From Hyaloraphidium curvatum SAG 235-1 (taxonomy: Eukaryota > Fungi > Monoblepharomycota): a stretch of 64,000 nucleotides of DNA. This document shows positions 19,370-24,869 of the stretch, in pieces. The stretch spans positions 558,001 through 622,000 of the forward strand of contig JAIVFI010000014.1 in assembly GCA_025558095.1 (NCBI GenBank), given 5' to 3'. Positions within the stretch are counted from its first letter, which is position 1. Every line of letters begins with the position of its first letter. Under the pieces are notes generated by a model. It ran no database searches and was not told the DNA's origin. It saw only the letters and a list, made by a program, of their open reading frames with translations. A program made the translations under genes and the position numbers.

Positions 19370-19936
19370 CTAGAGGCGAAGCTTCATGAAGAGGGCCACT
19401 TCCTGCTTGTCAAAATCGTCGTTGCTGTAGAAGGACATGTCGAACTTCTCGATGGTAAACCCCATCGCCCGATACGCCCTAATTGCAGGCACATTTCGGT
19501 TGGCCGTCTCGACCTCGATTACGCGGAACGACCTCTTGCGGGCCTCGTCGGCCAGCGTGGCCATCATGAGCTTCCCGACGCCCCTGCCGCGGTGCCCCTC
19601 GGCGACGTGGAATTCCCAGAGATTTACGGTGCCGTTCCAGGGCGTCGTCCCGGCGATGACCAGCCCAATCGTCGCTTCCCCGTCCTTCGCCAGGAAGCAG
19701 AGCCCGCCGGGCCGCACCAGAGACCCGTAGAAGTTGACGAGCTCGCTGCGGTGTTCCCATCGCTTCACGAAGGGTTCGGGCAGCTTCTCCAGTTCGAAGC
19801 GGAACGTCGTAAGCGCGTCCGCCTCTTCCCTGGTGAGCCTGAGCAGTTCATTCGACACATAGCCCACAGAAAGCGAAAGGAAGATGTCTCTGGAGAAGGA
19901 TTCCCAAGGGACGACAGTGATTTCGCCCGATGCCAT
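19370..19936 (-). CDS. GNAT acetyltransferase, streptothricin/nourseothricin acetyltransferase (Nat1/Sat)-like, intronless
   Basis: WNGTVNLWEFHVAEGHRGRGVG, ETANRNVPAIRAYRAMGF, FDMSFY..EVALFM. Confidence 0.85.
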   Translation of the reverse strand: MASGEITVVPWESFSRDIFLSLSVGYVSNELLRLTREEADALTTFRFELEKLPEPFVKRWEHRSELVNFYGSLVRPGGLCFLAKDGEATIGLVIAGTTPWNGTVNLWEFHVAEGHRGRGVGKLMMATLADEARKRSFRVIEVETANRNVPAIRAYRAMGFTIEKFDMSFYSNDDFDKQEVALFMKLRL

Positions 19937-20070: not shown

Positions 20071-22686
20071 ATGTCCGACTACGCGGACGACGTGGCCACC
20101 AACGGCCATTACAACGCGTCGCCGGAGAAGAACGGCGAGAAGCGGCGCCGCGTGACGCAAGGTGGGCTTCGCGGCGTCCCCCGCCGGCCCCGCTGACTCC
20201 CGCGGCCATCCCGCCCCGCCTGCCCGCGCGGCCGACGCAGCATGTGAGCATTGTTTGTTTGCTCCGTGCTGCCGCGGTTCTGACAGTCCCCGCCCCCGGC
20301 CGCCCCGCCGTCCCCCGCCGCAGGCGACCTGTGCTCGGAGCAGCGCGCAAAGTGTGACTCGATGAAGCCGTGCGCGCGCTGCGAGAAGCGCGGCACCGAG
20401 TGCACCTATCTGCGGCAGCCGAAGCGCCGCGGCCCGCCGAAGGGCACCGCAAACAGCATGCGCGAGCGGCTCTCGCGGCTGGAGCAGATTTACGGCGCCG
20501 TCAAGGCTGAGGAGATGCTGATGATGGCCGGCGTCGGCGTCCAGCTGTCGCAGCCGTCGCATATGATGAACGGCGGCCGCGCCCCGTACCGCGGCGTGTC
20601 CGTGGCGGCGTCCGCCGCGGACTCCGTGTCGGGCGACGAGGACGGGATCCGCAGCCCGGACAACTACGGCTCGCCGGCGCCGTACGTTCGTGACATCAAG
20701 CCCTCCGCTGCGGCCCTTGCGGCGGCGAGCGGCGATCCCGCCAGCCGCATGTCGATCGGGTCGCTGCTGGCCCAGCACAGCGCCAACGCCAACGGCCTGG
20801 TCACCTCGCCGCCGGCAAAGCCCAGCTCCTCCGCAACGCCCCCGCTCTTCCTCATGACCTCGGACAGCTCGCTGTCACTCATGCTGCCGCCCGAGGTCTT
20901 TGCCTCGGTCATGGACACCTACTTCACCTCCATCTTCCCCACGATCCCCATCATCCACCGCTACTCGCTCGAGCGCAACCCGCACTTTTACCCGCCCGCC
21001 CTCCTCTTTGCCGTCATGGCCGTTTCCGTGCGGTTCAACAACCACGCCTTTTTCGACACCCCGGCGGTCAGGGAGCAGTGGGCCGAGTGCCTGTTCCAGC
21101 AGGCCCACAAGCTGCTGCAGCCCCTGATCCTGGATCCCAAGCGCGTGCACTACCACCACGTCATCGCGCTGCTGCACGTGGTCAACTACTTCTTCCACAT
21201 GAAGGTTCGCGGCCGTCGTGCAGGCCCTGGCGAACCCCTCTGATCTGGATTCGCCAGACGGCGCTCCTTATTTCGACGCGCGGAACGAGCCTCGTTTTCG
21301 TGCTGCTTCGCGAACTGAGGCTGGATGAGGAGACGATCGCGCAGTGCCCCTTGCCTCGCTGGGTCCAGTACGAGGGTGAGATCACTTGCTTGCTTGCCAG
21401 AGTGCTGCTCACCTCGCGCCCTCAGAGTTCCGCAGGCTTCGCTGGAACATGTACTTTCATGACCGCGTGCTGACCTACGGCGCCGGCGCCGGCATCCGGC
21501 CCTTCGCTCTCGCTCGCAGCTCGCTCATCAACATGCGGTTCCCCGTGGTAGGTTGCTCGCCCGTCGTGCCTGGCCTGTGCCTGACGGCCCGACAGAACGA
21601 CAACCTCTGGCTCAACGGCGACACCACGGAGCCGGTCGCCACGTCGGCACCGATCACGTTGTCCATCTTCGAGCGCGACCTCTCGTCCTACGCCATCTTC
21701 ATGAGCGAGCTGGCACCCCTGTCGCGGATGATCATCCTTTTCTCTATTTTTGTGGGTGCTTCTCCTCCCTTGGCCCGCCAACGTTGTGCTGATTCTTTTT
21801 CCGGCGAACAGGAAAAGATCGTCTGCAACCTCAACGGTCTTCCCGGAGCCGAGTCCAAGGAGACCATCGCGCAGATGCTCGCGACGTGGTACGAGTGCCA
21901 GCCGCCGGAGGACAAGTTGCTCTCGTCGACGTCGGAGCCGTCGTACGGTCTGATCTACCTCATGATCGTTTACGTGGGTTGCCAGCAACACGGAGCAAAA
22001 CTCTTGTCACTGACGACTTGCCCATGATCAGCACACAATGGTGGTCATCATCCACTCGCCTTCCAACCTCGACGACATGTGGGCGGACGAATCGTGGCTC
22101 CTCTCGCAGGATTTCCTGGTCGCCGCCGAGCACGCGGGCCTGTGCACCAACTACCTCGAGGCCAACCCGCGCGCGCTCCAGTTCGCGCCGTACCTGGTCA
22201 AGATCTTCGTGCAGCGGGTTTTCTGCATGCACCTCATGCTGGCCCAGAAGCTGGCGCACGAGCAGACCTTCCAGGAGGACCTGAAGCGCAAGGTGAAGCT
22301 GCACATCCAGGCACTCGCCGTCATGGGGCGGACCGACAAGGTGGGCACGATCCTTTGGCCGGGGTGGAATGAAGCACCGTGCTGATGGGGACCGCAGATG
22401 TCGGCGATCACGGCCAAGCTGCTCGCGGTCACGGCCGAGGGCTCCCTGGGTCAGCTGCAGGGATCCGTCGGCGAGGTGTTCGCTGCCGCCGGGTTCACGC
22501 CGGAGGAGATGGCCATCATGGCCGACATCAACAAGGACTGGATTTCCGAGGTGGGGCGCGTCGCGCTCGATACGTGGCGGCACGCTGACGTTCGCTGCAG
22601 CGCGCGGGATTCCTGTCGCAAATGAGGTCGTTGATGCAGCGCAGCGTTGGGGTCAAGCCTCAGGAGTCCCCGCAGCCGGATCCTGA
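20071..22686 (+). CDS. Zn(II)2Cys6 transcription factor with fungal-specific TF domain
   Basis: Spliced KRRRVTQACDLCSEQRAKCDSMKPCARCEKRGTECTY; YFTSIFPTIPIIH, EFRRLRW; many introns. Confidence 0.9.
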
Positions 22687-22865
22687 GCTGTGATTTTGGG
22701 GTTCGCTACCGTTTGGTCTACATCTAGGTGCTCTGGGCGCGGGCATGGAAAAAGAGTTTTGGAATGTCTCGGGTCTTTTGCGGCGGCTACATCAAAGATG
22801 CGCCCCTGGGCCATCGCTGACGGGAGGCGTCAACTCCCGTCGATGGCGAGGCAGGGGGCTTTTTC

Positions 22866-24633
<1,768 letters not shown>

Positions 24634-24869
24634 CGTGTTGCACAAATGGGGATCAGCAGTCAACGGTCTGGAGTTGCGCGAGCTGACCAGTTGGTGGCGG
24701 CCCGACCGCGTCGATCAATCGACGAGCCGACCCGCGCACAGCCTCACGACCTGTTGATTCGGGGCTTGATCTGGTACCGTGATGAACGAAAAAAAGCAAA
24801 AGAACATCGTAACCTTGCTAGAGACCACGTGCCGCGCCCACGGCGGCCCAAAGACCGGCTCCTCCCCCG

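Follow-up and report, generated by a model that had tools for sequence, protein, structure and literature searches.

A predicted three-nucleotide exon contributes to the first zinc-ligand codon of a Zn2Cys6 transcription factor gene in the early-diverging fungus Hyaloraphidium curvatum

Background

The gene of a Zn2Cys6 transcription factor in Hyaloraphidium curvatum SAG 235-1 raises the question whether an exon of only three bases can supply the first of the six zinc-ligand cysteines (Cys1) and, if so, whether these bases are always included in the messenger or are sometimes skipped. The gene is located on the forward strand of the window, a stretch of 64,000 nucleotides that was analysed as a whole (contig JAIVFI010000014.1, positions 558,001 to 622,000), and occupies about 578,071-580,693 of the contig. 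A paralogue on contig C18 of the same genome corresponds to the NCBI protein KAI9020373.1 of H. curvatum, being identical to it over residues 1-31 and 94% identical over the remainder with the introns read through. Exons of three nucleotides have already been documented in fungi, for instance in Coprinopsis cinerea, in which long reads revealed exons of 3 nt or less, with 27 internal 3-nt exons in 26 genes (PMC12230235). The factor protein discussed here was predicted from the genomic DNA and by comparison with related loci.

Results

Exon 1 of the gene (20071..20161, forward strand) runs in translation from the ATG to ..RRRVTQ plus a G that forms the first base of an alanine codon, its 3' end reading ..ACG CAA G at 20161. 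It is followed by intron 1 (20162..20240, forward strand, 79 nt, GTGGGC..CAG), in which a CTGAC branch motif is found at 20192-20196, some 44 nt 5' of the 3' splice site, and of which the acceptor is the sole AG. The micro-exon CAT (20241..20243, forward strand, 3 nt) provides bases 2 and 3 of the alanine codon (G-CA) and base 1 of the Cys1 codon (T-GC). Intron 2 (20244..20323, forward strand, 80 nt, GTGAGC..CAG) has its own CTGAC at 20280-20284, which leaves about 40 nt to the 3' splice site. Exon 3 (20324..21204, forward strand) opens with GC GAC CTG TGC at 20324; it completes the Cys1 codon with two bases, encodes Cys2 to Cys6 and continues through a basic/coiled-coil linker into what is putatively the beginning of a fungal transcription-factor middle domain. 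The immediate flanks of CAT (CAG-CAT-GTGAGC) consist of a canonical acceptor and a canonical donor, and both introns have a workable length and a CTGAC 40-44 nt from the acceptor.

The remaining exons are tentative, as they were modelled from a splice-site scan, a reading of the sequence and a check of frame and stops. They lie within 21258..22693 on the forward strand (21258-21375, 21426-21547, 21596-21751, 21812-21973, 22032-22340, 22398-22550 and 22601-22693), and these downstream pieces find their counterparts in P0003, P0152 and P0151 of the orthologues. The other seven introns of the gene are 48-60 nt long. The predicted protein counts approximately 695 amino acids, or approximately 689 if the last candidate intron is kept. 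This candidate (22551-22600, 50 nt, GTGGGG..CTGAC..CAG) leaves an open frame with or without its removal; when it is removed the protein ends in ..PDPEL, and when it is kept translation stops at a TGA at 22623-22625.

With CAT included, the translation across the junction reads RRRVTQ-A-C-D-L-C-SEQRAK-C-DSMKP-C-AR-C-EKRGTE-C. Taking CX2CX6CX5-12CX2CX6-8C as the criterion for the cysteines of a Zn2Cys6 cluster, we found all six at the spacing CX2CX6CX5CX2CX6C in this form (ACDLCSEQRAKCDSMKPCARCEKRGTEC) and five cysteines without CAT. When CAT is skipped the product reads Q-G-D-L-C, in frame and free of stops, with a glycine in place of Ala-Cys1. The inclusion junction is ..ACGCAAG-CAT-GCGACCTG.. 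and the skip junction is ..ACGCAAG-GCGACCTG.., while retention of either intron alone leads to an early stop in translation. The initial annotation, which had placed CAT between introns 20162-20240 and 20244-20323 and had contrasted Q-A-C-D-L-C with Q-G-D-L-C, proved exact in its coordinates, its splice sites and both readings.

Gene models with a single intron were rejected, because among the 18 in-frame, stop-free models with a GT/GC..AG intron enumerated between 20100 and 20345 none has a cysteine at the Cys1 position. An alternative exon of 12 nt, generated by the weak donor GTTTGT at 20253, was also rejected; it gives a non-canonical C-X2-C-X2-C and is absent from the orthologues.

The domain profiles agree with this layout. 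The Pfam family Zn_clus (PF00172) matched the exon-3 piece alone with 32.3 bits (cut-off 21, E 1.1e-7) over profile positions 6-38, and because the match begins at profile position 6 the start of the cluster is absent from the exon-3 piece. The same match was recovered in a six-frame Pfam scan of the organism's own genome, there over profile positions 5-38. Fungal_trans (PF04082) reached 19.6 bits on the exon-3 piece against a cut-off of 23; the piece covers the first 100 of the 262 profile positions, and the domain would extend into later exons. The likeness to a Gal4-type Zn2Cys6 cluster (PF00172) lies in the spacing with CAT, followed by a basic stretch, a heptad-like linker and a putative fungal-specific middle domain downstream; what differs is confined to the gene structure, the protein itself being ordinary. 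Zinc-dependent DNA binding by a Gal4-type cluster is lost when any one of the six cysteines is missing, so the skip product would be binding-dead.

Orthologous loci were sought with exon 3. An exhaustive protein search returned a handful of close relatives and a word search one more; exon 3 is 61-66% identical to P0001 and P0002. None of the protein libraries searched with exon 3 or by words contained a product spliced at this junction. For three orthologous loci DNA was available, namely L001 (Logan assembly SRR23967301), L002 (an ENA metagenome scaffold) and L003 (Logan assembly SRR26194948). Two metagenome scans yielded no further orthologues, and the sample consists of four orthologues including the window.

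In all three loci the same layout was found: an exon 1 that ends in (K/R)R(K/R)RVTQ plus a G, a GT..AG intron, three bases, a strong donor and a second intron, after which the next exon opens with GC GAC CTN TGY. The three bases are CCT in L001 (810-812, AG-CCT-GTGGGT), CTT in L002 (1026-1028, AG-CTT-GTAAGT) and CCT in L003 (2673-2675, AG-CCT-GTGAGT). Bases 1 and 3 of the micro-exon, i.e. position 2 of the alanine codon GCN and position 1 of the cysteine codon TGC, are invariant over the four loci, and base 2, the wobble position of the alanine codon, shows three of the four possible bases (CAT, CCT, CTT and CCT). Over the next 45 codons amino-acid identity is 87-96% and third-position identity in conserved codons is 0.50-0.58, indicating that the species are old enough for unconstrained bases to have been randomised; the invariance of bases 1 and 3 thus reflects selection.

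The flanking introns have diverged. Intron 1 measures 79, 96, 91 and 80 nt and intron 2 measures 80, 171, 172 and 191 nt in the window, L001, L002 and L003, respectively, and the donors of intron 2 in the orthologues are GTGGGT, GTAAGT and GTGAGT. The flanking introns of the four loci could not be aligned, and no conserved intronic element was found near the micro-exon. Wobble-only change between diverged introns is the signature of a translated exon. A strict branch motif was not found in the introns of L002, and the one in intron 2 of L001 lies 128 nt from the acceptor; as strict branch motifs are missing or badly placed in part of the orthologous introns, splice signals in this lineage are looser than our scan assumed.

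Synteny supports the comparison. In the window a GNAT acetyltransferase gene (19370..19936, reverse strand, an open reading frame) lies divergently 134 nt from the ATG of the factor, and a zinc-type alcohol dehydrogenase gene (23068..24643, reverse strand, seen as open reading frame pieces) lies downstream in convergent orientation. An upstream divergent neighbour is present in L001, L002 and L003, with acetyltransferase Pfam families in L002 and L003 and as a gene for 177 amino acids in L001. An ADH_N/ADH_zinc_N gene follows downstream in L001 and L003, and L002 ends before the position concerned. As this arrangement agrees with that in the window, the orthology of the factor loci is secure. 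The recurring order of acetyltransferase, factor and alcohol dehydrogenase is a hint that one neighbour or both may be under the control of the factor.

Homologues in which this region is continuous tell what the missing residues should be. We aligned the exon-1 and exon-3 peptides of the four loci as separate rows together with six such homologues, and the exon pieces of the four loci leave exactly two columns empty between them, where each of the six contiguous homologues has 'AC'. The (K/R)R(K/R)RVTQ motif, kept in the exon-1 pieces of L001, L002 and L003, aligns with RVTQ or RVSK of the intron-free homologues, which across the junction read ...RVTQ-AC-D.C.... For instance, P0004, a paralogue from the same organism as L003, is encoded by one uninterrupted open reading frame in the DNA and reads GKRRRVTQACDNC. 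Another paralogue, P0006 from the organism of L001, has a single ordinary intron after Cys2 and lacks a micro-exon. The proposal of the initial annotation that the micro-exon supplies Cys1 is therefore upheld by the occurrence of C-N-T in four syntenic orthologues and of 'AC' at the same place in the homologues.

Chance would rarely produce such an arrangement. In dinucleotide-preserving shuffles of the 162-nt interval, AG-NNN-GTRRGY with two introns of at least 45 nt left over occurred in 13 of 20000, and in 1 of 20000 when the third base was required to be T. Under a looser definition of the donor a C-N-T micro-exon appeared in 8 of 5000 shuffles of the window interval, and in 3-8 of 5000 per interval over the four orthologous intervals. 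The chance expectation of AG-CNT-GTRNG is about 1e-3 (0.1%) or less per locus. Together with the substitution pattern, this makes the three-nucleotide exon very probably real.

Two candidate relations between introns were tried and rejected. The motif GTTTGTTTGCT, shared with an intron of the paralogous locus L027, is not a repeat family and its occurrence is compatible with chance. An origin of introns 1 and 2 by duplication of one intron was likewise dismissed, as the two are no more alike than shuffles (369 of 1000 reach the score).

Database gene calls for the orthologues do not contain the exon. That gene predictors would miss it had been anticipated, and for the orthologues this was borne out: in P0002 and P0151 the reading frame continues through intron 2, and the calls P0001 and P0010 start downstream at an internal methionine (MRERL). 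These four public calls and that of the paralogue P0006 are of the kind obtained by ORF-style calling on eukaryotic contigs. The N-termini of all five are intron read-through or internal starts and as they stand are unfit for domain analysis. A word search with the paralogue P0005 for a gene model from the organism's own genome returned P0005 itself alone.

We also surveyed the Zn2Cys6 genes of this genome. The six-frame Pfam scan gave 111 Zn_clus matches, 17 of which start at profile position 5, the present gene included; a start at this position means that Cys1 is not in the same open reading frame. Cys1 and Cys2 are encoded by different exons in approximately one seventh of the Zn2Cys6 genes in this genome. 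Eighteen loci (L013-L030) with a match starting at profile position 4 or later were read, and wherever an upstream exon was readable, a single ordinary intron interrupts the Cys1-Cys2 segment or adjoins it, and Cys1 is encoded upstream of it by an exon of the normal kind. Intron position and phase vary among the loci (after CD plus two bases, after C, inside TG-C, and others), and domain counts based on six-frame or ORF translation consequently under-call complete clusters. As introns between Cys1 and Cys2 are frequent in this lineage, we infer that the three-nucleotide exon may be the most extreme instance of a habit.

Some of these paralogues deserve mention in their own right. L017 (G000:C10:43600-44750, reverse strand) has an exon of 21 nt, RATTACD, that holds Cys1 between two canonical introns approximately 100-125 nt upstream of the Zn_clus match C10:43906-44007, and P0014 (152 amino acids) has it spliced in. 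In L027 (G000:C41:276500-277600) an intron of approximately 163 nt with two CTGAC motifs separates Cys1 (SCL) from PC, upstream of the Zn_clus match; counting the acceptor CAG as intron restores CX2C, where the ORF reading wrongly gives CX3C. One paralogue occurs with identical scores at G000:C10:42512-44010 and G000:C51:10690-12188 (also C51:353-481), which suggests either that it was duplicated recently or that the assembly contains it twice (haplotig).

Discussion

How would two introns separated by three bases be removed? Because the Cys1 codon is split across CAT, a functional mRNA needs both introns to be removed at exactly these sites. We propose that each flanking intron would be recognised independently by intron definition, from its own donor, branch motif and acceptor, and that the two would be removed one after the other. 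Since the three bases of CAT adjoin the 3' splice site of intron 1 and themselves occupy positions -3 to -1 of the 5' splice site of intron 2, removal would have to be sequential. As intron 1 is fully transcribed before the branch site of intron 2, inclusion of CAT would be expected as the default, probably near-constitutively. To this reading as a whole, with CAT a genuine coding exon, independent and sequential splicing, inclusion as the near-constitutive default and the structure the extreme of a lineage habit, we assign a probability of roughly 0.75.

In fungi splicing proceeds mainly by intron definition, exon skipping is the rarest alternative event and intron retention the dominant one. 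This weighs against the idea that CAT is a regulated cassette, in which donor 1 would be joined to acceptor 2 under some conditions to give an isoform that lacks the binuclear zinc cluster, keeps the linker/coiled coil and the putative middle domain, and could be DNA-binding-dead or dominant-negative. The skip product is indeed in frame and free of stops, but the frame is kept automatically for any exon of 3 nt. The structure persisted over four diverged species, yet the selection revealed by the conservation of the CAT equivalents concerns inclusion only. On its exon side donor 2 (CAT, CCT, CTT) is unlike the usual MAG, so that this site rests on its intron part, which would favour occasional skipping; skipping, however, would call for the removal of an intron of 162 nt in this gene and of 266-274 nt in its orthologues, whereas the two introns on either side of CAT have 79-80 nt and the other seven of the gene 48-60 nt. 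A precedent might be seen in the glucose-dependent 20-nt microexon of Xlr2 in Trichoderma virens, but its authors saw no reads joining exon 1 to exon 3, and Xlr2 is not a case of cassette skipping either (PMC11121469). Regulated skipping of CAT is accordingly an unlikely reading, and it is equally doubtful that the exon was retained for that purpose since before the four species diverged.

Regulation might also act through the rate of splicing, if slow or inefficient splicing around CAT led to variable retention of intron 1 or intron 2 and so tuned the expression of the factor. The retained forms, both with an early stop, would be degraded as transcripts or would yield a truncated peptide. Splice sites 3 nt apart would keep two spliceosomes from acting at once, and retention is, as said, the prevailing alternative event in fungi; set against this, the local RNA structure over the two introns is no stronger than in shuffles (z = -1.58) and no conserved intronic element near CAT emerged from the comparison of four loci. 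In T. reesei a sugar-dependent retention of the intron adjacent to the Xlr2 microexon was described, for which the authors suggest inefficient microexon splicing (PMC11121469). We regard such a kinetic control of the present locus as improbable. Supposing that there is any regulation at this locus, skipping is no likelier a mechanism than the retention of introns with their premature stops.

The least probable reading is that the micro-exon is not used, the gene having one intron of 162 nt and a degenerate cluster of five cysteines, or an N-terminus that was mis-modelled. Donor 1 and acceptor 2 are canonical, their joining keeps the frame, and introns of approximately 160 nt do exist in this genome (e.g. 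that of L027). It would require, however, that four loci had each come to carry AG-CNT-GTRNG at an identical codon position by coincidence, with a chance of approximately 1e-3 per locus, and that a codon-like substitution pattern arose by chance as well, and it leaves unexplained that homologues carry 'AC' exactly there.

The closest known system is Xlr2 of T. virens, whose 20-nt microexon encodes PCRRCE with two cluster cysteines and was missed by the JGI model (PMC11121469). Both cases concern a micro-exon in a Zn2Cys6 DNA-binding domain that provides zinc-ligand cysteines between canonical splice sites, is missed by the automatic model and is conserved among orthologues with third-position changes (PMC11121469). 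They differ in size and content, since in Xlr2 the exon has 20 nt for six residues and two cysteines and here it has 3 nt split over two codons and contributes to one cysteine, and also in kind of evidence: the glucose dependence of Xlr2 was seen by RNA-seq and RT-PCR, seemingly as separate transcripts (PMC11121469), whereas CAT is predicted from genomic sequence. The lineages differ as well: Xlr2 belongs to the Sordariomycetes and the present factor to an early-diverging fungus.

The exons of C. cinerea resemble CAT in being internal, 3 nt long and easily lost by annotation, with damage to the gene model as a result; those exons are transcript-supported, whereas the exon described here is put forward on comparative evidence, and no link to zinc ligands was reported for C. 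cinerea (PMC12230235). In Fusarium an exon of 1 nt in CYP621A was inferred from a phase mismatch and an intron-free homologue and has read support in the SRA (PMC12940212). Like CAT it is ultra-small, lies in a conserved motif and recurs, splice sites included, in the orthologues, but its omission breaks the frame, whereas omission of CAT keeps the frame and removes only the ligand (PMC12940212). An acceptor and a donor nearly back to back, requiring two splicing reactions in succession, are reminiscent of a stwintron or a recursive splice site. In those systems nothing is left in the mRNA at that point, whereas we see two ordinary neighbouring introns that are not nested. A stwintron or a zero-length recursive exon was rejected because the three bases must stay in the mRNA for Ala-Cys1, removal of the whole 162 nt giving a product without Cys1.

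Conclusions

What is new in the present case is the location in the Cys1 codon of a Zn2Cys6 cluster, the early-diverging fungal lineage, the depth of conservation and the fact that the database calls of the group are all wrong at this point. An essential zinc ligand would hang on a three-base exon that is absent from every gene call seen for the orthologue group, and in Zn2Cys6 catalogues of such genomes truncated or seemingly degenerate entries would really be annotation errors. The locus would add a deeply conserved case, recognised by comparison, to the small number of fungal micro-exons known from DNA-binding domains. If CAT were a regulated cassette after all, it would represent, for an early-diverging fungus, a splicing switch that controls DNA binding through a single codon, yielding a full-length, zinc-cluster-dead and possibly dominant-negative form of the factor. 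In either case the gene lends itself to testing how two spliceosomes deal with splice sites separated by 3 nt, and whether any use is made of skipping.
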